Positions 1,920 through 63,876 of a DNA stretch of 64,000 bases are shown in pieces. The notes under the pieces are model-generated. The model made no database searches and was not told where the DNA came from. It was given only the letters and a program-made list of their open reading frames with translations. The DNA lies in IMG/VR virus record IMGVR_UViG_3300020477_001008, positions 124,001-188,000 of that record; one strand, given 5' to 3'. The translations under genes were made by a program, and so were the position numbers. Numbering within the stretch: the first letter of the stretch is position 1; every line of letters begins with the position of its first letter.

Positions 1920-1948
1920 ATAATACGAAGTTTTTTAAGTAAAGTCAA
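1920..1948 (-). promoter_or_regulatory. sigma70-type promoter of rplK
   Basis: Minus strand TTGACT(1948-1943)-N17-TATTAT(1925-1920). Confidence 0.7.
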
Positions 1949-12121: not shown

Positions 12122-12165
12122 TACACATACAAATTAGCACATACAAAAATTGCGTAAATACACTT

Positions 12166-18341: not shown

Positions 18342-18848
18342 AATAAAACAACTGAAACGTTAGTATTATTTCTCTACTATATAGGTATTATAGCCTTGAG
18401 TAGAATAATACCACATCCACCAAACTTTACACCGGTTATTGCTATGGCAATTTTTATGCCATATATGACTCGCGATGTATATTTGGCTATGTTAGTTCCA
18501 ATTACGGCAATGTTTGTTTCAGATCTTTATTTGGGTTTGCACTCATTTATGATTTGGATTTATGGAACTATAATGTTATGTACACTTGTTAGTAGATATT
18601 TTAATTTAATAACAATGTCTATATTTGCACCAGTTATATTTTTTACAACAACTAATTTTGGTGTATGGTTAACAAGCACATTATATCCAAAAACACTAGA
18701 CGGTTTAATCTTATGTTACACGATGGCGATACCTTTTTTTAGAAACACATTATTGAGTACGATATTTTATATATTATTACTTGGAGCAATATATGAAATA
18801 GCAAAAAGGAGTTATACGTGGTTAAAAAAATATTACTATCTGCAATAA
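18339..18848 (+). CDS. DUF6580-like / ECF S-component-like membrane transporter (putative cobalamin)
   Basis: SRIIPHPPNFTPV.A.A.F motif, SDL.LG, NFGVW, Y..AIPFF.NT; multiple TM helices. Confidence 0.75.
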   Translation: MNKTTETLVLFLYYIGIIALSRIIPHPPNFTPVIAMAIFMPYMTRDVYLAMLVPITAMFVSDLYLGLHSFMIWIYGTIMLCTLVSRYFNLITMSIFAPVIFFTTTNFGVWLTSTLYPKTLDGLILCYTMAIPFFRNTLLSTIFYILLLGAIYEIAKRSYTWLKKYYYLQ

Positions 18849-20686
18849 TACTATTATGTTGGTGGCTTGTTATGACAAAGGTACAAGCTAATGAAACAGA
18901 ACAATTTAAATCAGAATCTTTTTATGAAGAAGATGGTGCGTTAGTTGTTGATATAACAATTTATTTGATTAGAGATCCAAGCACACTTACAACAAAATCA
19001 ATGAGTGTTGATTATGTAGACAAATACACAATTGAAAATACAAATAGTGTTGATACAATACAAGCAATACAAAGAGTAACAGGTTTAACAATAGTACAAT
19101 CAGGTCCAACAGGACAACAAACATCAATCTTTATGAGAGGAACAAATTCTAATCATACAATGGTTGCTATAAATGGAATACCAATTAAAGATAATTCAAC
19201 AACAGGCGGACTACACGATTTAGGACAAGACTTTATTAAACATATTACTGGAATACAAGTAGTAAAAGGTTCACAAGGAACACTATTTGGTCCAAATGCA
19301 GTTGGTGGTGTAATTAATTTTATTACAACAGACAGTTATGAAAATTCAATATCAACAACAATAGGATCAAACAATACTAAAGGTGTAACAGTAAAAATAC
19401 ACGAAGATATTGATAATCACTCAATAAGTTTAATTTTAGATGGTACAAAATCAGATGGTATATCAGTATATCCAAATGGTGCTGAAAAAGATGGATATGA
19501 TACTAAAAATATTACAGTAAACACAAATAGTAAATTTGAAAACTTTGATATAGGAACTACTATTATTAAAAGAAATAATAATTCAGATTTAGATGCATCA
19601 GGTTCTGATGATACAGATTACACATCAAATAACAAAATGAGTGTATATCAAATTTATACAAAAATAAAAAATGCACTAGGATTTAGTAATTTTACTTTTT
19701 CTAGAAGTGAATATGATAGAGAATATGTAAATGGTACAGAAATTGATGAATATGATTCAAATACGAACACTTATCTTTTTACAAATACTTTTATGTTTAA
19801 TGATTTTGATATAACGCCTGGTATTGAGTATGAACAATATGATGGTACGTTTAACAATAGAGGTTCATATACATCATCAGTTGATAAAGAAGGAGATAAC
19901 ACAGGAACATTTATTAATGGAAATTATCTAGTAAATGATAAACTTCTTTTTTCAATAGGTTTAAGAAATGATAACTCTAGTATGTTTAACAACTATAACA
20001 CTTATAGACTAGGTACTACATATGAACTAACTGATGACTTAACATTAAAAAGCAATTATTCAACAGCAGTAAAAACACCTACACTATACGAACTATATGG
20101 TGCAGACAGTTATGGTTATAATGGTAATCCTGACTTACAACCAGAAGAAGCAGAAACAATAGATATAGGTTTTGAATATCAAATAAATGATAAAATGGAT
20201 ATGGACCTTGTTTACTTTACTACTGACTTAGATAATATGATCACGTATGGTAATAGTACATATTCAAATGCAACAGGTACATCTAACAGACACGGTGCTG
20301 AATTAAAAATGAATAGTGCTATAGATGAAAACTTTTATGTAAGGTCAGGTACAACGTTTACTATTGCACAAGACAGTGATGATAAACAAGTTACTAGAAG
20401 ACCAAAATGGAATTGGTTTACAGGTATTGATTACAAGAAAGACAAAGTTACAAACACACTTGAATGGATTTATACTGGAAAGCATTTAGACATAGATTCA
20501 CAAACTTATGCTACTATTGAAAAACCAGCAGTTGATATAATTAATTTTCATTCAAAGTATGAGCTTAATGAAAGTTCAGAATTAATACTTTCTGTAAACA
20601 ATCTTACAGATGTAGATTATGAAAGACCAGATGGCTATTCGCAAGATGGTAGAAACTTCTTACTAACATTTAAAATTAAATACTAA
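18818..20686 (+). CDS. btuB: TonB-dependent outer-membrane receptor, BtuB-like (vitamin B12)
   Basis: Signal peptide; plug motif SIFMRGTNSNHTMVAINGIPI, GSQGTLFGPNAVGGVINFIT, NPDLQPEE; C-terminal NNLTD.DYE...GY...GR.F....K.KY; downstream of Cbl riboswitch. Confidence 0.85.
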   Translation: MVKKILLSAIILLCWWLVMTKVQANETEQFKSESFYEEDGALVVDITIYLIRDPSTLTTKSMSVDYVDKYTIENTNSVDTIQAIQRVTGLTIVQSGPTGQQTSIFMRGTNSNHTMVAINGIPIKDNSTTGGLHDLGQDFIKHITGIQVVKGSQGTLFGPNAVGGVINFITTDSYENSISTTIGSNNTKGVTVKIHEDIDNHSISLILDGTKSDGISVYPNGAEKDGYDTKNITVNTNSKFENFDIGTTIIKRNNNSDLDASGSDDTDYTSNNKMSVYQIYTKIKNALGFSNFTFSRSEYDREYVNGTEIDEYDSNTNTYLFTNTFMFNDFDITPGIEYEQYDGTFNNRGSYTSSVDKEGDNTGTFINGNYLVNDKLLFSIGLRNDNSSMFNNYNTYRLGTTYELTDDLTLKSNYSTAVKTPTLYELYGADSYGYNGNPDLQPEEAETIDIGFEYQINDKMDMDLVYFTTDLDNMITYGNSTYSNATGTSNRHGAELKMNSAIDENFYVRSGTTFTIAQDSDDKQVTRRPKWNWFTGIDYKKDKVTNTLEWIYTGKHLDIDSQTYATIEKPAVDIINFHSKYELNESSELILSVNNLTDVDYERPDGYSQDGRNFLLTFKIKY

Positions 20687-45792: not shown

Positions 45793-46998
45793 ATGGACAC
45801 TACTAATAATAAATTTTTTTGTTTTTATCCCTTTCGTGCGATTGATGTATTAGCAGATTCGTCTGTGGTACCTTGTTGTAGATTTGATGGAAGGCACGAC
45901 AAAAGCTTACAATATGTTAATGATAAAAATTCTATAACTGATGCGTTTAATTCTGATTACTTTAATAACTTAAGAAAAAAAATGTTAGCTGGTGAAAAAG
46001 TTAACGGTTGCTGGAAATGTTATAAAGAAGACGAAGCAGGTATTAAAAGTATGAGGCTTGGCTCTGATGAATTTATGGAGCAAACTACAGATGTAGGATT
46101 AGAATTTGTAGAATTAGAATCAGGTAGGTTTTGTAATTTAAAATGTAGATCGTGTAGCCCAGCAGTTTCAAGTGGATTTCATAATGAAGTTAAGTCTTCA
46201 AAATTTATGGCTGAACATTTTGGAATAGATTTAAACAATGAAATATTAGATCCTGCAAATCAATTAAACAAATCGTTTTTATATATTTCAAAAGAACAAG
46301 CACAGAAAATAAAATATATTAAAGTTACAGGTGGGGAACCTCTATTAAGTGAATATTTTTTAAAGTATATTCAAAATCTTAATGAATGGGGTTTGTCAAA
46401 AAATATCACTTTAGAAATCTATACTAATGCATCTTTTCTACCAAAACAAAAGCTCTCAGATGCGTTAAAACCTTTTAAAAAAATTTACTTGTTTATGAGT
46501 ATTGATGCTATAGGTAAAAAATCTGATTATTTAAGATCAGGTAGCAATTGGACTACAATGGAAAAAGTTGCAAAGCATTGGTATGATTTATCAACACAAA
46601 TGAATATGGAATTAAATGTTAGTACTACAATATCTATCTATAATGTTTTATATCTAAAAGAATTAATTGATTGGATACAACAAACTATTAAAATTTCTTG
46701 GCCAAGTATAAATTTTGTACATAATCCTTCGTATATGTGTGTATCAAGCTTTAATGTTGATATTAGAAATGAAATACTTAATACACTACAAAATACTTGG
46801 GACGAAAAAACATTAACAAGTAGGCAAGCCAGAGAATATAAAAAAATTATAAATTTTGTTGAAAATACTACAGAATCTATACCTCCTCACTATTTTTTTG
46901 AAACTACAGAAACAATAGATAAAATTAGAAATGAAGATTGGAAACAACTATTTCCGGAGTTATACAGCTTATTAAGTAGGTATAAAAACAGTATATAA
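45793..46998 (+). CDS. radical SAM protein with N-terminal twitch domain
   Basis: FCFYPF...PCCRF...GCWKCY; CNLKCRSC; VTGGEPLL; SIDAIG..YLR. Confidence 0.9.
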   Translation: MDTTNNKFFCFYPFRAIDVLADSSVVPCCRFDGRHDKSLQYVNDKNSITDAFNSDYFNNLRKKMLAGEKVNGCWKCYKEDEAGIKSMRLGSDEFMEQTTDVGLEFVELESGRFCNLKCRSCSPAVSSGFHNEVKSSKFMAEHFGIDLNNEILDPANQLNKSFLYISKEQAQKIKYIKVTGGEPLLSEYFLKYIQNLNEWGLSKNITLEIYTNASFLPKQKLSDALKPFKKIYLFMSIDAIGKKSDYLRSGSNWTTMEKVAKHWYDLSTQMNMELNVSTTISIYNVLYLKELIDWIQQTIKISWPSINFVHNPSYMCVSSFNVDIRNEILNTLQNTWDEKTLTSRQAREYKKIINFVENTTESIPPHYFFETTETIDKIRNEDWKQLFPELYSLLSRYKNSI

Positions 46999-47293: not shown

Positions 47294-48229
47294 ATGTCAA
47301 CAAGAAATATATGGGGTATAGGACAAGATACATTAAACTTTCCATCTGATACTATTCCAGTATCAAGTATGATGAGTGATACACAAAAGAATTTAATTAA
47401 TAGTGGATTACTTGATCAAGTTGATTTTACGGATCCTTGGGGAAGAAAATCTAAAGCATATCCTGGTTTTCAAAATCCGCATAATGATACTTTAACACAA
47501 ATTGCTAATGGCTGGAATTCAAGATTATCAGTTATGCCAGATGGTTGGAATGATAGCAACTATGCCAATAGAGCAGTTGTTGATGGAAATGCATTAGGTA
47601 ATGGTTTCAGTGCTAGAAAGTTAACTGATACAGAAATTAAAGATATTGGTTTTGTTGAAGGTATATTAAAAGACTTTACATTTTTAACTAATAGACAATC
47701 TGGTATGGACATTATGGAATATGCAAATCCTAATAGTATGTGGTCAGCATTAGGAAATACAGGTACCTATGGTGCTATGGTTGGTTTACCTACCACAGCA
47801 AGTTTTCCAACTGGTATTGTAGTTCCAGGTGTAACAAATTATCTTGGTGTTGCTAGAACTATAAATGAAATTGGACAAATTTTAAATAATGTACCAACAG
47901 GTTATACTTCTGGTCCTTGTAAATGGATAGAAGATATAATGAAAGCTGTAATGAAAGGTGGTTCAATATTAGCAGATATATTGAATAAAGTACTTGACGT
48001 ATTAGGCATCATTGGATTAGTAAACTCAATACTTGGTATGATTAAAATGTTAATGGATATGATACTTGAAGATCTAAGAACATTAGGATCAGCTATTGAA
48101 AGAATGAAGCAGGCGGCTTTATCTGGATTGTTAGAAGCATTAATGAAAGACCCTTGTATGAGATACTTAATTACGGCAGGGTTGGCAGTAGCTGGTACAG
48201 TAGCAATATTAAAAACAACCTCTCTATAA
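47294..48229 (+). CDS. hypothetical protein downstream of PAAR, hydrophobic helical C-terminus
   Basis: 311 aa, SD AGGAGG; long amphipathic/hydrophobic C-terminal helices. Confidence 0.75.
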   Translation: MSTRNIWGIGQDTLNFPSDTIPVSSMMSDTQKNLINSGLLDQVDFTDPWGRKSKAYPGFQNPHNDTLTQIANGWNSRLSVMPDGWNDSNYANRAVVDGNALGNGFSARKLTDTEIKDIGFVEGILKDFTFLTNRQSGMDIMEYANPNSMWSALGNTGTYGAMVGLPTTASFPTGIVVPGVTNYLGVARTINEIGQILNNVPTGYTSGPCKWIEDIMKAVMKGGSILADILNKVLDVLGIIGLVNSILGMIKMLMDMILEDLRTLGSAIERMKQAALSGLLEALMKDPCMRYLITAGLAVAGTVAILKTTSL

Positions 48230-48269
48230 TTTTTTCTTGTTTTTTCTAAAAATTCGTGTATAATTAACA

Positions 48270-48514
48270 GACAACGTTGAAGTTATCGTAATAGATTATA
48301 TGGACGTGGGGGCAGTACCCACCACCTCCACCATTAAGTTAAAAAGTTTTATGGGGGTGAACTAGGATCGACAGTAATTCAAAGGGTAATGGAGTTGTCC
48401 GGATGGAAGCTCGGTTAACGCGACAAACTTATAAATGCAGATGAAAATCTAGCACTTGCGGCCTAATTCGTTAGGCTAACGGGGTCCGGGGCACCTGGCA
48501 ACAGAACGCCCCAC
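48270..48514 (+). ncRNA. ssrA: circularly permuted (two-piece) tmRNA, alphaproteobacterial type
   Basis: Acceptor piece with T-arm GTGGG-GGCAGTA-CCCAC and CACCTCCA-CCA (ends 48333); 19-nt intervening segment; coding piece starts GGGGGTG at 48353 (G3:U70 pair) with GGATCGAC; tag gca gat gaa aat cta gca ctt gcg gcc taa = ADENLALAA (48437-48466); GGCAACAGAA; 5' end approximate. Confidence 0.93.
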
Positions 48515-48521
48515 TTGTATT

Positions 48522-48800
48522 ATGATAAAAAAAATTAAAGAATTTTGGGTAACAAGTTATAAATCAGATCCGTTTGCATTTATTAATGAAATGGCTTCAA
48601 CTATTCTAATAGTTATAGGATCAGCTATTTTAACGTGGACAGTATTAGATCCAAAGCCAGAAATTTTTATTCCTTTTTATTGGGCTGGTAGTATTGCTGG
48701 ATTTATAGGAGCATATCGTAGAACTCTGCCTTGGGTAATGGTATTGACATTTTGGTTTATAATGTTAAATAGTATTGCACTTTGGAGGTTGTTTTTATAA
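48522..48800 (+). CDS. small integral membrane protein
   Basis: Three hydrophobic segments in 92 aa. Confidence 0.7.
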   Translation: MIKKIKEFWVTSYKSDPFAFINEMASTILIVIGSAILTWTVLDPKPEIFIPFYWAGSIAGFIGAYRRTLPWVMVLTFWFIMLNSIALWRLFL

Positions 48801-49180
48801 TGGCAGAAGTACATAAACATTTGATAATCAGAGCTGAAACTAACAAAACACCAACTGATCCAGCTTGGGCTCATCAGTGGTTAACAAAGTTAGTAAAGAA
48901 AATAGGAATGAAAATTTGTCAAGGTCCTATTACTGCTTATGTTAATGTACCTGGCAATAAAGGATTAACAGGTTTAGTAGTTATTGAAACAAGCCATATT
49001 GCTTTGCATTGTTGGGATGAAGATGAGCCAGGATTGTTACAACTTGATGTTTACACTTGTGGACCGTTAGATGAACAAATTATTTTTAATGAACTAAAAC
49101 AATTTGATCCTGTTTGTGTAGAATACAAATACCTTGATAGAAAAAGAAATTTAAAAGAAATAGATGTCAATAAAAAATAA
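48800..49180 (+). CDS. speD: S-adenosylmethionine decarboxylase proenzyme (SpeD/SpeH-like)
   Basis: HLII.AE, GLTGLVVIETSHIALH.W, LDVYTCG; likely start MAEVH at 48800. Confidence 0.88.
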   Translation: MAEVHKHLIIRAETNKTPTDPAWAHQWLTKLVKKIGMKICQGPITAYVNVPGNKGLTGLVVIETSHIALHCWDEDEPGLLQLDVYTCGPLDEQIIFNELKQFDPVCVEYKYLDRKRNLKEIDVNKK

Positions 49181-49568
49181 AATAGACAATTGGGGAAAAC
49201 AATTATCAGTATTAGAAGGTATAGATAGATTACAATATCTAGTTGACCTAGCAGATAAAGAAACTTCATTGGCTAGTGATAAAAGAATAAATGCAAATAT
49301 GATACCTGGATGTGTATCTCAAATTTGGGTAGATGTTAGATTAGAAGATAATAAAGTTATTGCAGATTATGATTCAGATGCAATGATAACAAAAGGAATT
49401 ACAAGTGTAGTATGTGATTGCTTTACAGGTGCTACAAAAGAAGAAGTTAGCAATATAGTTGTAGAAGACTTTGAAAATTTAAATATTAAGCAATTATTAA
49501 CAGCACAACGACAAAATGGTTTAGGAAACCTGATCAATACAGTCATAAACAAGTCCCAGAAGTTATAA
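49164..49568 (+). CDS. sufE: cysteine desulfuration protein SufE
   Basis: DRLQYLVDL, catalytic IPGCVSQIW, DSDAMITKG and R.NGL. Confidence 0.9.
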   Translation: MSIKNKIDNWGKQLSVLEGIDRLQYLVDLADKETSLASDKRINANMIPGCVSQIWVDVRLEDNKVIADYDSDAMITKGITSVVCDCFTGATKEEVSNIVVEDFENLNIKQLLTAQRQNGLGNLINTVINKSQKL

Positions 49569-49607
49569 TAGTAGTTAAGTTTCTATTAACTACCCTTTAA
49601 ATACAAA

Positions 49608-50069
49608 GTGTCAAGCAGTAAGAGAGGCATAACCGCAATCTTCGTAGCATTAATGTTACTCATTGCAACTATACCTTTGAATCTTCATTCCAAGGCTAGT
49701 GCAAGTTCTGACAATTTTATCATAGATTTTAGAATTAATGTTTCGTATGGATTAGGTTGGCGAGTAGATACTCCAGATCCAATGACAATTATACCAGGTA
49801 AAGAATACAAAGTTAATTTAATGGCAGTAAATGATATGGATTCTACTAAAATTGCTGAAATTATGTATGGGTATTTGCCCCCTGAGTTTGCAAGATATTT
49901 TTTATTAGTAGAATGTTTTTGTTATGATACTATTAAATTAAAAGCAAAAAGAATAATTGAATTGCCAGTTGTTTTTATTATTGATCCAGCTATATTAAAA
50001 GATAGAAAATTTAGGAAAGATAAAAATATAACAATAAGATTCAATTTCTACCCACAGATAAAACGTTGA
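49608..50069 (+). CDS. cytochrome c oxidase copper chaperone CtaG/Cox11-like
   Basis: N-terminal TM anchor, Cu-binding ECFCY motif, LPVVFIIDP; GTG start. Confidence 0.72.
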   Translation: MSSSKRGITAIFVALMLLIATIPLNLHSKASASSDNFIIDFRINVSYGLGWRVDTPDPMTIIPGKEYKVNLMAVNDMDSTKIAEIMYGYLPPEFARYFLLVECFCYDTIKLKAKRIIELPVVFIIDPAILKDRKFRKDKNITIRFNFYPQIKR

Positions 50070-50094
50070 CTAAAACATAATTATATCATATAAT
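50066..50094 (+). promoter_or_regulatory. sigma70 promoter of the rnpB-tRNA-Ser transcript
   Basis: TTGACT(50066-71)-N17-TATAAT(50089-94), RNA starting at about 50101. Confidence 0.8.
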
Positions 50095-50100
50095 AGTTTT

Positions 50101-50260
50101 AATGAGTGTAATCGGACTATCGCTGGTAACAGAGGAAAGTCAGGACACAGGTGGATATGTGCAAGTCCAAATAGAGTGTTAACAACCACCGGGACACAGG
50201 GTAGGACGCAAAGGTAGATGATAGTCTAAAACAGAATCCTGCTTACGGATTATACTCATT
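50101..50260 (+). ncRNA. rnpB: minimal RNase P RNA (about 160 nt)
   Basis: P1 AATGAGTGTAATC/GATTATACTCATT; P2 GGACTATC/GATAGTCT; CR-I GAGGAAAGTC; CR-IV TAGATGAT; CR-V AAACAGAATCCTGCTTA; P4 with bulged U and compensatory CAGG/CCTG. Confidence 0.88.
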
Positions 50261-50268
50261 ACTAACCC

Positions 50269-50358
50269 GGAAGGGTGGCTGAGTGGTTGAAAGCACCGGT
50301 CTTGAAAACCGGCAAAGGCGCAAGTCTTTCGTGAGTTCGAATCTCACCCCTTCCGCCA
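50269..50358 (+). tRNA. tRNA-Ser(TGA)
   Basis: Cloverleaf GGAAGGG...CCCTTCC-G-CCA, anticodon arm CCGGT-CTTGAAA-ACCGG, long variable arm, TTCGAAT. Confidence 0.97.
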
Positions 50359-50380
50359 GTTAAATGAAAGAAAAAGAAAA

Positions 50381-50620
50381 ATGGAAGATAATGATACAAA
50401 ATTAAATGATGCTTATAACGTAATTTTTAAGCAAGTAGAGAAATTAACTAAAGATGGAGTAGAGCCTGTTATTATTGCTGGAACATTATTAGCTCAAGCA
50501 CTTAGGTTATACAGAACAGTATTATCAGAACCAGATTTTGAAAAAATGATGGATAGTGTCTTTGGTAGACTTGATGAAATTGAACCATATGGTCCAACTG
50601 ATAAAACTTTGCTTCACTAA
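50381..50620 (+). CDS. hypothetical protein
   Basis: 79 aa helical ORF. Confidence 0.7.
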   Translation: MEDNDTKLNDAYNVIFKQVEKLTKDGVEPVIIAGTLLAQALRLYRTVLSEPDFEKMMDSVFGRLDEIEPYGPTDKTLLH

Positions 50621-50645
50621 ATATGTATAAAATAGAAATAAAAAT

Positions 50646-51005
50646 ATGACCTATTATGTTAATCAAGCCTGTGTAATGTGTAAACACACCGATTGCGTGG
50701 AAGTTTGTCCAGTAGATTGTTTTTACGAAGGTGAAAATTTTTTAGCAATTAATCCAGATGAATGTATAGACTGTGGAGTTTGTGAACCAGAATGCCCAGT
50801 TGATGCAATTAAACCTGACACACACGATGAACCAGACAAAGACAAATGGATAGAAATTAATAAAAAGTATTCAAGTGGACCAAACAGATGGCCAGTATTA
50901 ACAAAAATGATTGAAGCATTAGAAACAGCAGAAGAATATGCAACTAAAACAGATAAAATAAATTTATTATCAGAAAAACCTGGACCAGGAGATGAAGGAC
51001 GATGA
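50646..51005 (+). CDS. fdxA: 7Fe ferredoxin FdxA ([3Fe-4S]/[4Fe-4S])
   Basis: MTYYV...[43 protein letters not shown]. Confidence 0.95.
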
Positions 51006-52042
51006 GTAAAAAGTTTAGTGAGAAGTGGCGAGAAGAAAAAGAAGCTAAAAAGAAAAAGAAATTAGAAAAAGCTGGAGTTAAGCCTGATCCAGAAGTAGGC
51101 AAAAATCTAGATCAAGTAATGAAAAAACAAATTAAAATTGATCTTAACACTCTTAAAGATAGACATTTATTCATTGCCACACCGGCTTATGGTGGTTTAG
51201 TAGGAGAAGCATATTTAAAAGCTATGGTAAGAGTAGGTATATTGTTTAAACAATACAATTTAAACTTTACACTTTGTACAATAGCAAATGAATCATTAAT
51301 AACCAGAGGTAGAAATACACTGACAGCTATGTTTATGAGTGATCCAAAATTTACTGATATGATGTTTATTGATGCTGACATACATTTTGAAGCAGAATCA
51401 GTTATAAAGTTATGGGCTCATATAAGCAATCCAAATTTACCACAATGTGAAGTTGCCATTGGGGCATATCCAAAGAAAACTATTAATTGGGAACAGATTC
51501 ATAAAGCAGTAAGAGCCGGAGCGTCAGTTGATGATATGACTTTACATCAAGGTTCTTATGTAATGAATATTCGTATGGATAATAAAGGAAGAATACCATT
51601 AACAGATGGATTAATTCCTGTATATGATGGTGGAACTGGATTTATGATATTCAAAAGAGAAGTAATACAAACAATGATGGACAAATGGCCTGACTTGCAT
51701 TATAAAAATGATTTAAATACAAACCCTAAACACGATCCATATATGTTTGCTTTATTTGATACTATTATTGATCCTGATACAAGACGTTATTTGTCTGAAG
51801 ATTATACTTTTTGCAGACGTTATCAAGAAATAGGTGGAACAATTTGGATGGATCCTTCTATTAATTTAGATCATCAAGGAAATTATTTGTTTAAAGGTAA
51901 TATTTCTAATCAGTTTACTTACTCAGGTGAAGCAACACAAGAAGAAATGAAAACTATTAATAAAGAGATGGAACTTAATATAGCACCAACACCAAATGAA
52001 CAAAAACCACAAGGTGAATCAAGTGATGAAACAGAACTCTAA
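51002..52042 (+). CDS. GT-A-fold glycosyltransferase-like protein
   Basis: [23 protein letters not shown] (DxD), GTGFM and SEDYTFC..G..IW.D...H.G. Confidence 0.6.
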
Positions 52043-56058: not shown

Positions 56059-56264
56059 AAACCAGGAAAGAGAGAATAAAAAAAATTGACATCAACGATG
56101 AAATTAGTGTACAATTAAAAGAAGTAAAAAAAACTATTGATATGGAAGGCATTAATCAAAGAACTCAAAAAACACTGGCACTCAATCACGGAGCAAAAGG
56201 TGAGACAGTAATATCCAAGGCTGACAAAGAATGGTTAGATCAGAAATCAGATAATAATAAATGA
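56046..56264 (+). other. -1 frame extension of the 54361 gene (72 open codons) or small ORF 56142..56264
   Basis: Frame open from 56046 to TGA 56262-64, overlapping the clpX ATG. Confidence 0.45.
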
Positions 56265-57553
56265 GCGATAAAGAGATTAAAATGAAATGCTCGTTCTGTG
56301 AAAAGACTAGAGCCGAATCACATAAATTAATAGCAGGACCTAAAGAAACATTTATTTGCGATGAATGTGTAAAACTTTGCCACGATATTTTAAAAGAAGG
56401 AACAATTGAAAACGAAACAAAAGAGTTTGCTATTCCTGATCCAAAAAAATTACACGGATATTTAAATGAACACGTAATTGGTCAAGATAGAGCAAAGAAA
56501 ATTGTTAGTGTAGCAGTTTATAACCATTATAAAAGAATTGTTAATAATTTAATTAAAGAAGATGGGCAAGACGAAATTGAAAAATCTAATGTTATGATGT
56601 TAGGACCATCAGGTGTTGGAAAAACACTTTTAGCTAAAAAGGTTGCTGAATACGTAAATGTACCATTTGCTATTGCTGATGCAACAACAATAACAGAATC
56701 AGGTTATGTAGGTGATGACGTAGAGAATATTGTAACAAGATTATTGCAACAAGCAGACTTTAATGTTGAAAAAGCTGAACGTGGAATTATATACATTGAT
56801 GAAATAGATAAAAAAGCAAAAAAAGGTGAGAACGTATCAATTACTAGAGATGTATCTGGTGAAGGTGTACAACAAGCTTTATTAAAAATTATTGAAGGAA
56901 CAACTGTTAGAGTTCCGCCACAAGGTGGAAGAAAACATCCTGGTGCAGAAATGATTGAAGTTGATACATCAAATATATTGTTTATAGTTGGTGGAGCATT
57001 TGTTGGTATAGATAAAGTTATTAATAAAAGGGCTAATAAGTCAGCAGGTATTGGATTTAATCAACGAGTAGAAACTGTTGATACAGGATTTGATGAATGC
57101 GAACCAGATGATTTAATTAAGTATGGATTAATACCTGAACTTGTTGGAAGGTTACCAGTTATAGTAGGTTGTCATAATTTAGATAAAAAAGATTTAAAAG
57201 CAATTATGCTTGATGTAAAAAATTCATTGATTAAACAATCTCAACGTTTATTTAAAATGGAAAATGTAAATTTAATTATAACTGAAGATGCAGTAGATTA
57301 TGTAGTAGATGAAGCACACGAAAAGAAATTAGGTGCTAGAGGATTAAAATCTGTGTTAGAAAAAGGTTTATTAGAAATACAATATGACTTACCAGAATAC
57401 AGAGATGGTGGAGTTAGTGAAATTACAGTTACAGAAAAAACGCTCAAAGGAGAAAAACCGATGCTCACTTATGAGTTTGATGCTAAAGATATAAAAGCTA
57501 AAGAAACAAAAAAAGGGAAAAAGGAAGATAACGGTACAACAGGAAAAGAATGA
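56261..57553 (+). CDS. clpX: ATP-dependent Clp protease ATP-binding subunit ClpX
   Basis: Zn domain CSFC...ICDEC; Walker A GPSGVGKT; pore loop GYVG; IDEIDK; RDVSGEGVQ; RKH loop; IGF loop (AGIGF). Confidence 0.97.
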
Positions 57554-58104
57554 AACAAAGATATAGTAATTACGAGTATCAAAAAAAGAAAGCATTAATT
57601 AACGAGAATATTAGAAGTAAAGAAGTTCGTTTAATATTAGAATCATCACAAGAAATAGTAACTACACAAGAAGCATTAAGATTATCTAGAGAGCAAGATT
57701 TAGATCTAGTTTGTGTTAGCACAAAATCAAATCCACCTATATGTAAAATTATGGATTATGGGAAACATCTATATGAACAAAAAAAGAAACAAAAAATTGC
57801 TGATAAAAAACAAAGAGAAGCTATTGTGGATACAAAAGAAATCCAGTTTAGACCAGCAACTGGAATTGGAGATCTTAAAGTAAAAGCTAAAAAGGTACAA
57901 GAGTTTATAGATGATGGAGATAAGGTAAAATTAGTAATGAAATTGCGTGGCAGGGAAAATGCTATGAAGGATTTTGCTATGGAACAATTCAAAAAATTTG
58001 TTGATTTAATTGAGAATTATGACTACGATTATAGGCCAAATATACAGGGAAATAAAATACTTGCAATTTTAAAGAAAGGTGTTATAATAAAGAACAATGA
58101 GTGA
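57550..58104 (+). CDS. infC: translation initiation factor IF3
   Basis: INENIR..EVRLI, DLDLV.VS....[28 protein letters not shown]....RGRE. Confidence 0.95.
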
Positions 58105-58453
58105 TAAACCAAGGAAAAAATACGACATCAAAAATTTCTCTAATTTTGGGAAATTTGAGCAAAAGCGAGATCGAAGACCAAGACGTGAGCCAGATCCACC
58201 TGGTTTAGCAGTTACAGTTCACGGCGACGATGTAATGAAAGCTTATAGAAGGCTTAAAAAGAAACTAATGAAAGATAACCTTATGGATACAATAAGGGAT
58301 AAAAGATATTACAAAAAGCCAAGTGAAATTAGACAAGAAAAATTAAAAGTGCAAAGAAGGAATATGCAAAAAGCTCAAAGAGATAGAGCTATGCAATATG
58401 GTATAAGATATAAAAACTATGATCCTAGCACAGCCAAAACACGTGGCTATTAA
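58097..58453 (+). CDS. rpsU: 30S ribosomal protein bS21 with N- and C-terminal extensions
   Basis: VTVHGDDVMKAYRRLKKKL...RYYKKPSE.R core; own promoter TTGCAA-N16-TGn-TATAAT-N8-ATG. Confidence 0.85.
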   Translation: MSDKPRKKYDIKNFSNFGKFEQKRDRRPRREPDPPGLAVTVHGDDVMKAYRRLKKKLMKDNLMDTIRDKRYYKKPSEIRQEKLKVQRRNMQKAQRDRAMQYGIRYKNYDPSTAKTRGY

Positions 58454-58934: not shown

Positions 58935-59010
58935 GGGCGGTTAGCTCAGTTGGTAGAGCATCTCGTTTACACCGAGGGGGTCAAAGGTTCGAGTCCTTTA
59001 CTGCCCACCA
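58935..59010 (+). tRNA. tRNA-Val(TAC)
   Basis: GGGCGGT...ACTGCCC-A-CCA; anticodon loop TTTACAC; TTCGAGT. Confidence 0.97.
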
Positions 59011-59014
59011 TTAC

Positions 59015-59090
59015 GGAGTATTAGTGTAGCGGTTAACACGTCGCCCTGTCACGGCGAAGACCACGGGTTCGAATCCCGTATACTCCGCCA
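59015..59090 (+). tRNA. tRNA-Asp(GTC)
   Basis: GGAGTAT...ATACTCC-G-CCA; anticodon arm TCGCC-CTGTCAC-GGCGA. Confidence 0.97.
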
Positions 59091-59108: not shown

Positions 59109-60314
59109 ATGCACAATATTCGAAAACAATTTCCCATATTTGATAAAACATTACCTAACGGTAAAAAATTAGTATATTTAGATAGTGCTAATTCTTCACA
59201 AAAACCGAAAAGGGTATTAGATAGATTATATGATTTTTATGCACAAGAATATAGTAGTGTTGGGAGAAGTATACACCAGTTAAGTACAGGTGCAAGTAAA
59301 TGTTTAAATGATAGTAGAGAAGCAGTTGCAAAATTTTTAAATGCTGGTTCTGTAGATGAAATTGTTTTTACTAAAAGTGCCACAGAAGCTATTAATACGA
59401 TTGCAGAAAGTTTTGGCAGAACTCAACGTGATCATTATGAAATAATTTGTTCTGAATTAGAACATAATTCAAATTATCTTCCTTGGCATTTGCAAAGAGC
59501 TCATAAAAATGCAACAATTAAATTTATTCCTTTAAAAGATGATTATACATTAGATGTAGATAAGCTAGAAAGTTTAATTACTAAAAAAACTAAAATGATA
59601 GCAATAACTCATTTATCAAATGTTACTGGAGAAGTAATTAATGTTAAAAAAATATGTGAGATAGCACACAGTAAAGGAATAGCAGTTTTTGTAGATGGTA
59701 CACAAGGTGCACCACATATGAAAGTTGATGTACAAGATATTGATTGTGATTTTTATTGTATTAGTGGTCATAAAATGTACGGACCTTCAGGCGTTGGGGC
59801 TTTGTACGCCAAAGAAAAATGGTTAGATGAATTATCGCCTTTTCAAGGTGGTGGTGGAACGGTACTTGATGCAACGCAAAGTGTTATTCAATATGCAGAT
59901 GGACCAAAAAAATGGGAAGCTGGAACACACCCAGTTGCTGAAATTGTAGCATTAAAAGAAGCAATTGATTTTTATTATGATGTTGGATTTGATAATATGT
60001 TAAATCACGAAAAACAATTAGTTGAGTATTTGTATGAAAAATTAGCATCTGATAATGATATTGAGTTACTATGTGGTAATAAGCCTAATGCTGTTTTATC
60101 ATTTAATATTAAAGGAATACATCACGAAGATATGTCAATGTTTTTAGATGAATATGGTATTGCTACAAGACCAGGTCAACATTGTGCTATGTTATTCCAT
60201 AAAAGGTACAGTTTAACTGGTTCTGTTAGAGTATCATTAGGTGTATATAATACCAAAGAAGAAATGGACTTTTTCTTACAGTCTTTGGGTGAAATTAAGA
60301 AGAGATTATCCTAA
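59109..60314 (+). CDS. sufS: SufS-type cysteine desulfurase
   Basis: VYLDSA.SSQKP, ELEHNSN, PLP lysine SGHKMYGP, catalytic RPGQHCA, R.SLG.YNT.EE. Confidence 0.93.
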   Translation: MHNIRKQFPIFDKTLPNGKKLVYLDSANSSQKPKRVLDRLYDFYAQEYSSVGRSIHQLSTGASKCLNDSREAVAKFLNAGSVDEIVFTKSATEAINTIAESFGRTQRDHYEIICSELEHNSNYLPWHLQRAHKNATIKFIPLKDDYTLDVDKLESLITKKTKMIAITHLSNVTGEVINVKKICEIAHSKGIAVFVDGTQGAPHMKVDVQDIDCDFYCISGHKMYGPSGVGALYAKEKWLDELSPFQGGGGTVLDATQSVIQYADGPKKWEAGTHPVAEIVALKEAIDFYYDVGFDNMLNHEKQLVEYLYEKLASDNDIELLCGNKPNAVLSFNIKGIHHEDMSMFLDEYGIATRPGQHCAMLFHKRYSLTGSVRVSLGVYNTKEEMDFFLQSLGEIKKRLS

Positions 60315-60319
60315 TCCTA

Positions 60320-60367
60320 TTGACTTCCTGATAAGTATTTTATATAATACTGATGTACAATTAAATA
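60320..60367 (+). promoter_or_regulatory. tandem sigma70 and late promoters for rplL-sufB
   Basis: TTGACT(60320-25)-N17-TATAAT(60343-48); TAAATA 60362-67; SD AAGGA. Confidence 0.7.
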
Positions 60368-60385
60368 TAATTAATAAGGAAAACT

Positions 60386-60856
60386 ATGTCAGAAGATGAA
60401 GTAAAAAAAGCTGAAGAAACAAAGGCAGAAGAAAAGCCAGTAGAACCAAAAGCTGAAGAAACATCTAAAACTATTACAAGAAATTTAGATGCTATTGTTG
60501 AAGAACTTGGACAATTAACAGTTATGGAAGCGGCCGATCTTGCTAAAAAATTAGCTAAAGCTTGGGATATTGATTTAGATAATATGGCGGCCGGTGTTGC
60601 ACCAGCAGGTGGTGGCGCCGCGGGAGCTCCAGCAGACGCAGATGCTCCTGTAACAGTTATATTAAAAGATTTTAAAGAAGGTACTAAAATTAATGTCTTA
60701 AAAGCAATTAAGGCAATTAAAGGTTTAGGACTAATGGAATCTAAACAATTTGTAGAAGCATTACCTAAAGAAGTTGATTCAGAAATACCAAGAGATAAAG
60801 CAGAAGAAATTAAAAAACAATTGGAAGAAGTTGGCGGTAACGTTGAAATAAAATAA
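60386..60856 (+). CDS. rplL: 50S ribosomal protein bL12 (L7/L12) with N-terminal extension
   Basis: [16 protein letters not shown], Ala/Gly hinge, [34 protein letters not shown]. Confidence 0.95.
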
Positions 60857-62280
60857 TGTTAGATGAGCATAAGGTAGGAAAAGATTATAAAGAAGGCTTT
60901 ACTACGGACATTGAAGCCTATACACTACCCCCTGGTCTAAATGAAGACGTTATTAAAAAGATATCAAGTTTTAAAAAAGAACCACAATGGCTTTTAGACT
61001 GGAGACTAAAAGCTTATAAGGTTTGGCTGAATATGAAACAGCCTGAGTGGGCAAAGTTAGATATTAAGCCAATTGACTATCAAGCAATATCATATTATTC
61101 AACACCTAATCCTAAATTAAAATCTTTAGATGAATTAGATCCTAAAATTTTAGAAACATATAATAAGTTAGGTATTCCATTACACGAACAAAAAGCATTA
61201 GCAGGTGTGGCCGTTGATGCAGTATTTGATTCTGTATCTGTAGCTACAACGTACAAAGCAGATTTAGAAAAACAAGGTATACTTTTTTGTAGCTTTAGTG
61301 AAGCAGTAGAAAAATATCCAGAAATAGTTAAAAAATATTTAGGTAGTGTAGTACCACAAGGTGATAATTTTTTTGCTTGTTTAAATTCAGCTGTATTTAC
61401 AGATGGTTCATTTGCTTATATTCCTAAAGGAGTTAGATGTCCTATGGAACTATCAACTTATTTTAGAATAAATGCGGCCAACACAGGACAATTTGAAAGA
61501 ACATTAATTATATGTGAAGATGATGCATACGTATCTTATCTAGAAGGATGTACAGCACCAATGCGTGATGAAAATCAATTACACGCCGCGGTAGTTGAAT
61601 TAGTAGCAAAAGAAAATGCAGAGATAAAATATTCAACAATACAAAATTGGTATCCAGGAGATGAAGATGGAAAAGGTGGTGTATATAATTTTGTAACTAA
61701 ACGTGGTAAATGTCAAGGACGTAAAAGTAAAATATCTTGGACACAATTAGAAACAGGTTCAGCATTAACTTGGAAGTATCCTTCTTGTGTATTAATGGGA
61801 GATTATTCAGTAGGAGAGTTTTATTCAGTAGCAGTATCAACAGGTAAACAACAAGCTGATACAGGAACTAAAATGATACATTTAGGAAAACATACAAAAT
61901 CAACAGTTATATCAAAAGGTATTTCAGCAAAACAAGGAAAGCAAACTTATAGAGGATTAGTATCAATGGGTGGTAATGCTAAAAAATCACAAAACTATAC
62001 TCAATGTGATTCGTTGCTTCTTGGAGATAAGTGTTCAGCACTTACTATACCTTATATTAAAAGTAAAACAAAATCTTCTAAATGCGAACACGAAGCGTCA
62101 ACATCAAAAGTATCTGATGAACAATTATTTTATTTAAGACAACGTGGACTTAAAGAAGAAGATGCTGTGAACTTAATTGTAAATGGTTTTGTAAAAGAAG
62201 TAACTAAACAGTTACCAATGGAGTTTGCAGTTGAGGCCAATAAACTTTTATCAGTAACATTAGAAGGATCAGTAGGATAA
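60856..62280 (+). CDS. sufB: Fe-S cluster assembly scaffold SufB
   Basis: [55 protein letters not shown] and CEHEASTSK. Confidence 0.97.
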
Positions 62281-62501
62281 TGATAGATAAATTAGATTTA
62301 AGAACGTTGCAAAAAGAATCAGCAAGAGCATTAATAGTAATGCAAAATGCTGACAATTTATCTTTATCTGAAATAAATCAAAAAGTTAGTCACGACTCAA
62401 CTATATTTTATAAAAAAGTTTTAGAAAAATATGTAGAACTGTTTGGTGACTTACCAAGTAAAACAACAGAAGGACAAAAAATAAATTTAATAATGGAGTA
62501 G
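62280..62501 (+). CDS. hypothetical protein
   Basis: 73 aa, coupled to sufB. Confidence 0.7.
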   Translation: MIDKLDLRTLQKESARALIVMQNADNLSLSEINQKVSHDSTIFYKKVLEKYVELFGDLPSKTTEGQKINLIME

Positions 62502-62505
62502 TTTT

Positions 62506-63876
62506 ATGAAAGTAGACAAATATATTAAAGTAATTGATGAGTCAATTGAAGCACAGAAAAAATGGAGAACTGTTCCTGCACCTGTACGTGGTGAGGCAAT
62601 TAGAAAGTTTGGAAATAAATTAAGAGAAAATTTAGTATCAGTTGGAAAAGGTGTTACTAGAGAAAGTAAAAAAATATTAGTAGAAGGTATAGGTGAAGTA
62701 CAAGAAGTAATTGATATGTGTGATTTTGCAGTTGGGCTATCAAGACAACTATATGGAAAAACAATGCCTTCTGAAAGACAGGATCATAGACTACAAGAAA
62801 TTTGGAATCCTATTGGAGTAGTTGGTGTAATTACAGCTTTTAATTTTCCTGTTGCACCTTGGGGTTGGAATTTTTGTTTAGCAATTGTATGTGGTAATAG
62901 TGTTATTTGGAAACCATCTCCAAAAACAATGGAAGTATCTCATTTATGTAAAAAGATTTGGGACGAAACTGTAGAAACTGATGATGAACGTAAACTTTTA
63001 GAAATTATAGATGGTGATGTAACTGAATCACGTTGGATGGCACAAGACAAAAGGATTAATTTATTAAGTGCTACAGGTTCTTGTGAAATGGGTAAAGCAT
63101 TAGCACCATTAGTATCAGAAAGAATGGGTAAAGGATTATATGAATTAGGTGGAAATAATGCAATGGTTGTGTCTAAACACGCAAATTTAGATTTGGCAGT
63201 AAGAGCTATTGTTTTTAGTGCAGTAGGAACTTGTGGACAAAGATGTACAACATTAAGAAGATTAATAGTACACGAGTCTAAATATGATGAATTATTGGAA
63301 AGATTAACAAAATCATATGCAAGTTTACCTATAGGAAATCCAATAAAAAGAGAAAATTTAGTAGGTCCATTAATAAATCAACAAGCATTAGATAAAATGC
63401 AAGGTGTATTAAAAGAATGTAAAGAAAAAGGATATACAATACACGGCGGAGAACCATTAGCAGATCTTGGAGAAGGCTTTGTTAAACCTGCTATTGTTGA
63501 AGTACCAGAACAATGCGATATTGTAAGAACAGAAACATTTGCTCCTATTTTGTATACTATGAAATATAATGAGCTAGATGAAGCAATAGCAATACAAAAT
63601 GATGTAGATCAAGGATTAAGTTCTTGTATATTTACAGACAATATTCAAGAAGCTGAAACATTTATTTCTGCACAAGGTTCAGATTGTGGAATAGTAAATA
63701 TTAACATAGGACCATCAGGTGCAGAGATTGGTGGAGCATTTGGTGGAGAAAAAGATACAGGCGGCGGAAGAGAATCAGGCTCTGATGCTTGGAAACAGTA
63801 TATGAAAAGAACTACTGTTACAACAAACTATGGTAAAGACCTACCATTAGCACAAGGAATAACATTCGATGCCTAA
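62506..63876 (+). CDS. aldehyde dehydrogenase, ALDH7 / piperideine-6-carboxylate dehydrogenase family
   Basis: GVITAFNFPVAP, ELGGNN (catalytic Glu), GTCGQRCTT (catalytic Cys), ETFAPILY, GAEIGGAFGGEK.TGGGRESGSD.WK.Y. Confidence 0.92.
   Translation: MKVDKYIKVIDESIEAQKKWRTVPAPVRGEAIRKFGNKLRENLVSVGKGVTRESKKILVEGIGEVQEVIDMCDFAVGLSRQLYGKTMPSERQDHRLQEIWNPIGVVGVITAFNFPVAPWGWNFCLAIVCGNSVIWKPSPKTMEVSHLCKKIWDETVETDDERKLLEIIDGDVTESRWMAQDKRINLLSATGSCEMGKALAPLVSERMGKGLYELGGNNAMVVSKHANLDLAVRAIVFSAVGTCGQRCTTLRRLIVHESKYDELLERLTKSYASLPIGNPIKRENLVGPLINQQALDKMQGVLKECKEKGYTIHGGEPLADLGEGFVKPAIVEVPEQCDIVRTETFAPILYTMKYNELDEAIAIQNDVDQGLSSCIFTDNIQEAETFISAQGSDCGIVNINIGPSGAEIGGAFGGEKDTGGGRESGSDAWKQYMKRTTVTTNYGKDLPLAQGITFDA

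Follow-up and report, generated by a model that had tools for sequence, protein, structure and literature searches.

A 64-kb stretch of the 242.6-kb IMG/VR contig IMGVR_UViG_3300020477_001008, hereafter the window, carries a sigma-70 type promoter, a minimal RNase P RNA of about 158–162 nt and a tRNA-Ser(UGA) in a row on its plus strand (Table 1). A permuted tmRNA gene lies 1.6 kb upstream and two more tRNA genes follow further downstream. The window is from a jumbo myovirus, as it encodes a tail sheath, a T4-type terminase and a UvsW helicase. It also carries a large translation set of the tmRNA, three tRNAs, ribosomal proteins L11, S21 and L7/L12, and IF-3. An organelle or cellular origin was considered because of cytochrome b, Suf genes, the ribosomal proteins and IF-3, but was rejected for the window because of the tail sheath, the terminase, UvsW and the contig itself.

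Table 1. Features of the RNase P RNA locus and of possible substrate genes in the window.
Position	Strand	Feature	Details
50066–50094	+	Sigma-70 type promoter	-35 TTGACT (50066–50071), 17-nt spacer, -10 TATAAT (50089–50094); predicted start about 50100–50102, at the first pair of P1
50100–50261	+	Minimal RNase P RNA	P1, P2, P3, P4, P5, P6, P15 and P16; no P7–P14, P17 or P18
50100–50113 with 50248–50261	+	P1	14 bp
50114–50121 with 50220–50227	+	P2	8 bp
50123–50125 with 50130–50132	+	P3	3 bp, GUAA loop
50132–50141	+	CR-I	GAGGAAAGUC
50137–50139 and 50141–50145 with 50237–50244	+	P4	8 pairs; U50140 bulged; A50142 in place of the usual C; CR-I and the P4 5′ strand together span 50132–50145
50146–50149 with 50158–50161	+	P5	8-nt loop where the whole specificity domain would be
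50150–50154 with 50186–50190	+	P6 pseudoknot	5′ strand is the first 5 nt of the P5 loop; 3′ strand is in the P16 loop
50162–50219	+	J5/15 to J15/2	J5/15 is CAAG; includes P15, L15, P16 and J15/2 with CR-IV
50165–50168 with 50204–50207	+	P15	
50176–50180 with 50193–50197	+	P16	
50199–50203	+	L15 GGGUA	GGU motif at 50200–50202, pairing with the tRNA 3′ CCA in type A enzymes
50216–50221	+	CR-IV	AGAUGA; 69 nt from the end of the P4 5′ strand
50228–50245	+	J2/4 and P4 3′ strand	CR-V ACAGAA at 50232–50237; P4 3′ strand AUCCUGCUUA
50262–50268	+	Linker and tRNA 5′ leader	CUAACCC, 7 nt; expected RNase P cleavage between 50268 and 50269, inferred from the known site at tRNA position +1
50269–50358	+	tRNA-Ser(UGA)	Encoded 3′ CCA (50356–50358); inferred co-transcribed substrate
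48221–48557	+	Permuted (two-piece) tmRNA	Tag ADENLALAA; possible further substrate, not shown to be one
58935–59090	+	tRNA-Val(UAC) and tRNA-Asp(GUC)	4 nt apart, both with encoded CCA; likely further substrates

The RNase P RNA and its structural elements

The bacterial type A RNase P model of Rfam, RF00010, aligns 50104–50261 (+) over model positions 1–367. The score is 77.5 bits, with an E-value of 7e-24 in a 471-nt search and 9.5e-22 over the whole window on both strands. This is below the curated gathering threshold of 100 bits, so the scan of the window at that threshold gave no RNase P hit and standard annotation would miss it. The shortfall comes from the deletions and not from a poor match of what is present. 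In the alignment, 155 model positions of the specificity domain (S-domain) are replaced by 5 nt and the 24 positions of P18 by none. Our own model R1 scores 194 bits and finds one copy in the window.

The match is not chance. Besides the E-value, the fold is more stable than shuffled sequences (z −3.9), with none of 200 shuffles as stable. The promoter has 11 of 12 consensus matches and is the best in 47500–51500. The tRNA-Ser was called by ARAGORN and matches the Rfam tRNA model at 63.2 bits, while the tmRNA matches alpha_tmRNA at 152.8 bits and tmRNA_permuted at 125.6 bits. No ORF of 50 aa or more overlaps 50070–50380.

The original prediction, of an RNase P RNA with its specificity domain almost absent in tandem with a tRNA under one sigma-70 promoter, is supported. 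Every element that it listed is in place, including the CAGG/CCUG pair change in P4. Two details are corrected here, in that the match falls below the Rfam threshold and that P18, on which the prediction was silent, is absent as well.

Homologues and their conservation

We found 27 distinct relatives of the same size, mostly in marine metagenomic and IMG/VR contigs. Larger relatives of about 180–370 nt in other viral contigs form a size series up to a full-length type A RNA. Of 16 hits in 185,579 species genomes, one (L127) is a minimal-like RNase P RNA, another (L125) looks like part of an ordinary full-size one, and the other 14 look like chance matches in unrelated, apparently coding sequence. 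The minimal RNA and relatives of 210, 308 and 367 nt had no blastn match in 50,697 deposited phage records, although blastn is insensitive for structured RNA and this is weak evidence of absence. No cultured model phage was found. The tmRNA led to Methylophilales phage Melnitz, but the 24 kb around its ssrA gene has no hit to our model.

Several other hits were set aside. Most of the 59 hits to a 16-nt CR-V/P4 pattern were chance, four loci (L015, L132, L133 and L134) gave no model hit, and two (L082 and L106) were judged by eye only. Two contigs (L001 and L004) matched the spacing pattern of the minimal form by chance, inside a full-length type A RNA. This was confirmed for L001, and L004 shows the same sequence over the region compared. 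A scan for even smaller forms, with 35–65 nt between CR-I and CR-V, found none in viral contigs.

The helices covary, with 90% of cells paired against 32–38% in controls with slid partners. On the 27 same-size homologues, 90.1% are paired against 32–37%, 26 of 51 pairs change on both sides, and none of 500 shuffles reaches the observed score. On 36 sequences including larger relatives, 90.5% are paired and 36 of 46 pairs change on both sides. The sequences are related, which can inflate the shuffle-based statistics, and the slid-partner controls address this only in part. P4 is 100% paired in the 36 sequences, where the A50142–U50240 pair is A-U in 34, C-G in one and G-C in one, and another pair is A-U or G-C. 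The P6 pseudoknot appears as five different complementary helices at the same place, GGUGG/CCACC, GGCAG/CUGCC, GGUAG/CUACC, GUUGAG/CUCAAC and GCUGG/CCAGC.

The catalytic core is also under selection. The homologues were retrieved with patterns that required CR-I and part of CR-V, so the conservation of those motifs is partly by ascertainment. However, the core joining regions not used for retrieval are about 94% conserved, with 24 of 36 positions invariant, against 61–76% for P1, P2, P3 and the loops. The L15 GGGUA is invariant in the family. Moreover, a scan that did not require CR-I, P4 or CR-V recovered the same 7 viral loci, all with these motifs intact.

The gene layout is conserved together with the RNA. 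All 29 distinct upstream contexts have a TTGACA-like hexamer, a spacer of exactly 17 nt but varied sequence, and a TATAAT-like hexamer. The -10 ends 34–38 nt before GAGGAAAGUC, or 45 nt in homologue L078, where P3 is longer. A CCA-encoding tRNA starts 11–24 nt after the P4 3′ strand in 33 of 35 distinct contexts, although its identity changes among Ser, Asp, Ala and Gln. In the syntenic relative L002, the minimal RNase P RNA sits directly upstream of the tRNA-Asp that lies within 58935–59090 in the window. All phage tRNAs inspected encode CCA, and in one clade they are spaced by only 1–3 nt in most gaps.

Comparison with known RNase P RNAs

Among the closest known RNAs are the bacterial type A RNAs such as E. 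coli M1 RNA. The phage RNA has the same order and sequence of CR-I, J5/15, L15, CR-IV and CR-V, the same helices P1–P6, P15 and P16, and the bulged U in P4. It differs in its size of about 160 nt against the usual 340–420 nt (PMC4919922), in the loss of P7–P14, P17 and P18, in the 3-bp P3, in the A-U pair of P4 where bacteria have C-G, and in being encoded by a phage next to a tRNA. In layout it is close to the engineered catalytic-domain constructs, which cleave pre-tRNA less efficiently (PMC5839562), but it is natural.

The type T RNAs of Thermoproteaceae (Pyrobaculum, Caldivirga, Vulcanisaeta) are the natural precedent for an RNase P RNA that keeps the catalytic domain, lacks nearly the whole specificity domain and is missed by standard covariance models (PMC3579882, PMC4919922). 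The resemblance is in architecture only. Type T is archaeal, has a 3-bp P2, a shortened P15, a 2-nt P5/P15 linker and P7–P9 or P10 stubs (PMC3579882), works with several archaeal proteins and is the only RNase P RNA of the cell. The phage RNA has an 8-bp P2, a CAAG linker and no P7–P10 stub, coexists with a host enzyme, and has its best match in the Rfam RNase P clan to the bacterial type A model.

The mitochondrial rnpB/RPM1 RNAs of budding yeasts and some other fungi are similar in size at the small end, about 150 nt in Saccharomycopsis fibuligera. The yeast gene lies between those of tRNA-fMet and tRNA-Pro in a genome transcribed as polycistronic precursors (PMC3790967), so its maturation is linked to tRNA processing. 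In the minimal mitochondrial RNAs, only P1 and P4 (CR-I and CR-V) remain recognisable and a large dedicated protein is needed (PMC3790967). The phage RNA keeps the complete bacterial catalytic domain including P6, P15 and L15, and is in a tailed phage rather than an organelle.

The full-size and intermediate RNAs in other viral contigs (L001 of 367 nt, L066 of 308 nt, and L013, L030, L032, L039, L043, L057 and L131 of 208–255 nt) sit in or next to phage tRNA arrays. Most share the same P4 variant, GUCAGGAC/AUCCUGCUUA, and several are directly followed by a tRNA. They keep all or a 45–70-nt remnant of the specificity-domain region inserted in the P5 loop, whereas the window clade has lost it completely. 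The forms from 367 nt down to about 160 nt give a pathway of ribozyme reduction that can be studied.

We found no report of a phage-encoded RNase P RNA in full-text literature searches, which did not cover most subscription journals, or in the huge-phage survey (PMC7162821). Phages are known to carry tRNAs, tmRNAs, ribosomal proteins and translation factors, and an RNase P RNA would extend that set to tRNA maturation. RNase P RNA is one of the few universal ribozymes and its minimal functional size is a long-standing question, approached so far with engineered deletions, type T RNAs and degenerate mitochondrial RNAs. A bacterial-type catalytic domain of about 160 nt, kept by selection with an exact excision of the specificity domain, is a natural experiment on it and is small enough for direct structural and kinetic work.

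Possible functions of the minimal RNA

The locus encodes a real RNA that is kept by selection, a homologue of bacterial type A RNase P RNA reduced to its catalytic domain. All helices and joining regions that build the active site and the CCA-binding loop are present. In the absence of activity, transcript or RNA-end data, we consider it most likely, though far from certain, that this is a functional RNase P RNA. It is also a gene in its own right, as the relative in L030 ends in an intrinsic terminator and the homologue in L074 has no tRNA after it.

By inference, host RNAP makes a precursor of the minimal RNA plus tRNA early in infection, and RNase P cuts it at tRNA position +1. The first cut is probably made by the host holoenzyme and later ones possibly by the phage RNA itself. 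The cut would mature the tRNA 5′ end and release the ribozyme with a short 3′ tail. The originally predicted freeing of the 3′ end by cleavage at the tRNA fits the data. The released RNA probably binds host RnpA, whose known binding surface lies in the catalytic domain. It would then add RNase P capacity for the closely spaced, CCA-carrying tRNAs of the phage and perhaps for its tmRNA, recognising substrates through the acceptor stem and the L15–CCA pairing rather than the T-loop contact of the lost domain.

The use of host RnpA is an assumption. No RnpA gene was found among the 60 ORFs scanned, which include every ORF of 86–170 aa in the window, but the window is only 64 kb of the 242.6-kb contig. 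Loss of the S-domain and P18 lowers substrate affinity in engineered RNAs, so the in vivo activity may be weak. The benefit to the phage is also unclear in a host that already has RNase P. A bolder and unlikely view is that the RNA is an autonomous minimal ribozyme, which frees itself by cutting its tethered tRNA in cis and then works in trans on the phage tRNAs and tmRNA, possibly without depending on the host RNA subunit. That would give a phage its own tRNA-maturation enzyme, and define the smallest bacterial-type RNase P RNA and a new recognition mode by the acceptor stem and CCA only.

Other functions are conceivable but less favored. A cis-acting, single-use unit, in which the tether replaces the binding energy lost with the S-domain and little or no activity in trans remains, would fit the tRNA adjacency, which survives the changes of tRNA identity, and the precursor 50100–50358 folds into two independent domains. 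However, the distance from P4 to the tRNA varies and P1 ranges from about 4 to 14 bp, which argues against a tuned intramolecular geometry. L074 and the larger relatives L030, L039 and L043 have no adjacent tRNA, several tRNAs follow one ribozyme in clade B and need cleavage in trans, and the host enzyme would cut the site anyway. This reading is doubtful. Equally doubtful is a non-catalytic use of the fold, such as a decoy that captures host RnpA and lowers host tRNA maturation, or a stable 5′ structure that protects or times expression of the tRNA. The protein-binding half is indeed kept while the tRNA-body-binding half is lost, a strong early-type promoter would give high copy number, and no phage RnpA is seen among the window ORFs scanned. 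Yet nucleotides needed for chemistry and substrate docking, namely the bulged U, the P4 pairs, J5/15, the L15 GGU and J15/2, are invariant where the retrieval left them free. Lowering RNase P activity would also harm the phage tRNAs, and a mere protective hairpin would not need two conserved pseudoknots.

A relaxed or redirected specificity toward non-tRNA targets with an acceptor-like stem and CCA, such as the tmRNA precursor, phage mRNAs and host RNAs, seems still less likely. The S-domain is lost while the CCA-binding loop is retained, and bacterial RNase P is known to process tmRNA, mRNAs and phage RNAs (PMC4919922). A permuted tmRNA lies upstream also in the homologous locus L016, and tmRNAs lie near the larger relatives in L057 and L131. 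The conserved partner is, however, an ordinary tRNA, most homologous loci fetched show no tmRNA nearby, and no candidate non-tRNA target was identified. Very unlikely is a decaying relic of a captured host rnpB gene, kept only because its promoter drives the tRNA. The size series could be read as progressive decay, but the deletion is exact at helix boundaries, with P7–P14 replaced by 1–3 nt and P6 preserved, and 26–36 pairs show compensatory changes. The core is conserved across two divergent clades and 27 distinct sequences, and the motif-independent scan found no degenerate copies. This reading is already largely refuted by the covariation. A split enzyme with the S-domain encoded elsewhere was rejected within the window, where no separate S-domain-like hit exists at E up to 1. 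An attachment-site fragment of host rnpB was rejected because both ends of the RNA are present, with an exact internal deletion and covarying helices.

Detection and anatomy of the RNA

The region reads as in the original prediction of a reduced RNase P RNA followed by tRNA-Ser. ARAGORN and Rfam both place tRNA-Ser(UGA) there. At the curated thresholds of Rfam, the window shows a permuted tmRNA, an AdoCbl-II riboswitch and three tRNAs, but no RNase P. With E-value reporting, however, the bacterial type A model RF00010 aligns over all its 367 positions with a score of 77.5 bits and an E value of 7e-24 for the 471-nt search and 9.5e-22 for the whole window on both strands.

The alignment explains the score below the threshold. 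The specificity domain of P7–P14, taking up 155 model positions, is replaced by 5 nt and the 24 positions of P18 by none, while P3 and P16/P17 are shortened. Everything else aligns at high posterior probability. The RNA folds more stably than its shuffled versions with a z of −3.9, and no ORF of 50 aa or more overlaps 50070–50380.

The promoter-like site upstream is the best one in the surrounding 4 kb, matching 11 of 12 positions. From the end of its −10 box, transcription should start at about 50100–50102, at the first pair of P1. In P4, an A-U pair stands where bacteria have C-G, and this is the CAGG/CCUG change noted in the original prediction. The positions of the helices and joining regions, read from the sequence under the guidance of the RF00010 alignment, are listed below with the other features.

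Positions of the RNA elements and other features in the window and in other contigs
Feature	Source	Position	Strand	Detail
Promoter-like site	window	50066-50094		TTGACT, 17 nt, TATAAT; −10 box ends at 50094
RF00010 alignment	window	50104-50261	+
P1	window	50100-50113 with 50248-50261		14 bp
P2	window	50114-50121 with 50220-50227		8 bp
P3	window	50123-50132		3-bp stem with a GUAA loop
CR-I	window	50132-50141		GAGGAAAGUC
P4	window	50137-50139 and 50141-50145 with 50237-50244		U50140 bulged
P5	window	50146-50149 with 50158-50161		8-nt loop in place of the whole specificity domain
P6 pseudoknot	window	50150-50154 with 50186-50190		first five nucleotides of the P5 loop with the loop of P16
J5/15	window			CAAG
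P15	window	50165-50168 with 50204-50207
L15 GGGUA	window	50199-50203		internal loop; its GGU pairs with the tRNA 3′ CCA in type A enzymes
P16	window	50176-50180 with 50193-50197
J15/2	window			contains AGAUGA (CR-IV)
J2/4	window			contains ACAGAA (CR-V)
Linker	window	50262-50268		seven nucleotides between P1 and G+1 of the tRNA
tRNA-Ser(UGA)	window	50269-50358		ends in an encoded CCA
Permuted (two-piece) alpha-type tmRNA gene	window	48221-48557	+	tag ADENLALAA
AdoCbl-II (B12) riboswitch aptamer and downstream genes	window	18165-20686	+	aptamer 85.1 bits; DUF6580 protein 18339-18848; TonB-dependent receptor with a plug domain 18818-20686
Ribosomal proteins L11, S21 and L7/L12, IF-3 and a ClpX homologue	window	1472-1948 (−), 56261-57553, 57550-58104, 58097-58453, 60386-60856 (+)
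Metabolic genes around the RNA	window	48782-51005, 59109-63876	+	AdoMet decarboxylase, SufE, CtaG/Cox11, ferredoxin, SufS-like aminotransferase, SufB/D, aldehyde dehydrogenase
Radical-SAM/SPASM proteins	window	10802-13290, 45793-46998
Type A RNase P RNA	L001	3892-4258	+	367 nt, full-length, 167.8 bits
Type A RNase P RNA	L066	5040-5347	−	308 nt, 102.6 bits
Intermediate RNase P RNA	L030	6193-6404	−	GUGGGAG...CCAC motif
Intermediate RNase P RNA	L131	12070-12279	−	GUGGGAG...CCAC motif
Intermediate RNase P RNA	L057	1936-2143	−	GUGGGAG...CCAC motif
Intermediate RNase P RNA	L032	7790-8009	+	GUGGGAG...CCAC motif
Intermediate RNase P RNA	L043	1241-1495	−	GUGGGAG...CCAC motif
Intermediate RNase P RNA	L013	3887-4103	+	217 nt
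Intermediate RNase P RNA	L039	4734-4965	+
Minimal-like RNase P RNA	L127	3929-4109	−	181 nt, GC-rich, canonical CCGG P4
GOLLD RNA	L013	5642-6103	+	178.9 bits
Cytochrome b and TolC-like outer-membrane efflux protein	L010	6160-7428 (−), 11502-13025 (+)
Borderline tRNA-Sec hit	L032	835-921	+	48.5 bits, threshold 47

Relatives, covariation and gene layout

A spacing-restricted pattern of CR-I, 65–95 nt and CR-V found seven true homologues in IMG/VR contigs. One of them (locus L008 in the 242.6-kb contig IMGVR_UViG_3300020477_001008) is identical to the window and another comes from a 328-kb contig. The same idea applied to metagenomes gave 41 loci, nearly all true homologues, and many have Tara or 'marine metagenome' record names. 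In total, there are 27 distinct sequences of 158–170 nt, which fall into two main clades differing in P1, P3, P5, P6 and P16, plus the outlier locus L074.

In one genome for each of 185,579 bacterial and archaeal species, the pattern found no member of this clade. It found one minimal-like RNA (L127) inside a tRNA array on a 20-kb contig binned to a groundwater Elusimicrobia MAG, which may be a mis-binned phage, a prophage or an independent reduction. It also found one piece of what looks like an ordinary full-size RNase P RNA (L125), and the other hits look like chance matches. Among 50,697 deposited phage records, blastn found nothing.

The structure is under selection. On the 27 sequences, 90.1% of cells are standard pairs, against 32–37% when the 3′ partners are slid by 1–3 columns. 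Both sides change in 26 of 51 pairs and no shuffle of 500 reaches the observed covariation score, although the sequences are related, so the shuffle statistics overstate significance. We also built a covariance model, R1, and aligned 36 sequences including larger relatives with it. In this alignment, 90.5% of cells are paired and 36 of 46 pairs change on both sides.

Neither P4 nor P6 was part of the model. P4 is paired in every sequence, with A-U, C-G or G-C at the variant position. In the 12 distinct versions of P5/P6/P16, all but L074 have P6 as the longest complementary stretch of 5–6 bp, always starting right after P5, in five different sequences. L074 carries the same GGUGG/CCACC as the window.

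The sequence is under selection as well. CR-I and part of CR-V were required for retrieval, but the joining regions J5/15, L15 and J15/2 were not constrained by our patterns and are 94% conserved, with 24 of 36 positions invariant. This compares with 61–76% for P1, P2, P3 and the loops. Moreover, two scans keyed on L15/J15-2 instead of CR-I, P4 and CR-V recovered the same seven viral loci, all with intact catalytic motifs, plus three chance hits.

The gene layout is also conserved. All 29 distinct upstream contexts carry a TTGACA-like hexamer, exactly 17 nt and a TATAAT-like hexamer, while the spacer sequence differs. The −10 ends 34–38 nt before CR-I, or 45 nt in the locus L078 with a longer P3. 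In 33 of 35 distinct contexts, a tRNA begins 11–24 nt after the P4 3′ strand. One further locus is cut off too early to tell, and L074 instead runs into an ORF.

The tRNA is Ser(UGA), Asp, Ala or Gln, depending on the lineage. In the locus L002, syntenic with window 54–62 kb (ClpX, SufB, SufC, SufS), the RNA sits before tRNA-Asp rather than tRNA-Ser. Therefore, the order of the minimal RNase P RNA and then a tRNA is kept while the partner changes. All phage tRNAs we read encode CCA, and up to four tRNAs follow in one clade, mostly separated by only 1–3 nt. RNase P cleavage alone would then nearly finish both ends.

Larger relatives in other viral contigs, found with R1 and Rfam, form a size series. 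The full-length RNA of L001 lies in a tRNA array of a 113-kb contig, and the RNA of L066 is full-length or near full-length and is also inside a tRNA array. Phage-borne RNase P RNA is therefore not limited to the minimal form. The seven intermediates of 208–255 nt keep a 45–70-nt insert in the P5 loop, which may be a miniature replacement or remnant of the specificity domain, and five of them share a motif in it. Several of the larger relatives are also followed directly by a tRNA. In the tRNA-rich contig L013, a GOLLD RNA lies 1.5 kb from the RNase P relative, and L032 has 13 tRNAs besides the borderline tRNA-Sec.

Inferred mechanism and comparison with known RNase P RNAs

The RNA is a structurally conserved homologue of RNase P RNA, reduced to the catalytic domain only, with its own promoter and a tRNA immediately downstream. 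Thus, the original interpretation is supported in its main point, an extremely reduced RNase P RNA. We are highly confident that it is an RNase P RNA homologue under selection, and only somewhat more confident than not that it acts as a catalytic subunit during infection.

We infer that the host RNA polymerase makes the precursor of the RNA plus tRNA, and that cleavage at tRNA +1 releases the RNA. It would bind host RnpA and add RNase P capacity for the phage tRNAs and possibly for the tmRNA, docking substrates through the acceptor stem and L15-CCA rather than through the T-loop. No RnpA (Pfam Ribonuclease_P) was found in the 60 ORFs scanned, including all ORFs of 86–170 aa, of a window that is only about a quarter of the genome. 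As to precedents, the bacterial catalytic domain alone is active, though less efficient (PMC5839562). The type T RNAs of Thermoproteaceae lack nearly the whole S-domain, yet are the accepted RNase P RNAs of those archaea (PMC4919922, PMC3579882).

The releasing cleavage could alternatively occur in cis. By our rough estimate, a 7-nt linker could just span a 14-bp P1 back to the P4 end. However, the variable lengths of the linker and P1, the relatives without a tRNA and the multi-tRNA arrays do not favour it, and the host holoenzyme would suffice for the cleavage. We consider the cis route unlikely. Another idea is that the fold is only a tRNA leader. The intermediate RNA of L030 ends in an intrinsic terminator and that of L039 has a promoter ending exactly at its 5′ end, so the larger relatives look like independent RNA genes, which argues against this idea.

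The RNA descends from the bacterial type A RNase P RNA and probably works like it, but falls short of RF00010 in the score threshold and the S-domain. It resembles the archaeal type T in architecture but not in lineage signatures. It also resembles the smallest mitochondrial rnpB genes in size, about 150 nt, and may resemble them in being flanked by tRNA genes (PMC3790967), while keeping far more of the consensus than they do. Bacterial P RNAs are typically 340–420 nt (PMC4919922).

We found no report of a phage-encoded RNase P RNA in the full texts searched, including the huge-phage survey, although most subscription journals were not covered and prior description cannot be excluded. What appears new is that a bacterial-type RNase P RNA with the catalytic domain only is natural and phage-borne. 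This bears on the minimal size of a universal ribozyme and would extend the known translation toolkit of phages.

Genomic context

The window is from a jumbo myovirus. It has a tail sheath, a T4-type large terminase, UvsW, a RecA/UvsX-like protein and ribonucleotide reductase. The terminase is 53% identical to that of Pseudomonas phage PA5oct and 50–53% to those of alphaproteobacterial jumbo phages. GC content is 30–35%, about 32% overall, and 75 of 80 ORFs are on one strand.

The phage carries an unusually rich set for translation and quality control, made of the tmRNA and three tRNAs, the ribosomal proteins L11, S21 and L7/L12, IF-3 and ClpX. The only blastn relatives of the tmRNA among deposited phages are short matches to the ssrA of Methylophilales (OM43) phage Melnitz. 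The host could therefore be a streamlined marine alpha- or betaproteobacterium.

A dense run of metabolic genes surrounds the RNA, and several radical-SAM/SPASM proteins lie elsewhere. The IMG/VR contig L010 of 24 kb, which carries the clade-B minimal RNA, also encodes a full cytochrome b and a TolC-like protein next to the tRNA array, unusual cargo for a phage if its viral assignment holds. In the window, the AdoCbl-II aptamer lies just upstream of the DUF6580 protein and the TonB-dependent receptor, and this looks like an outer-membrane uptake module controlled by a B12 riboswitch and carried by a phage.
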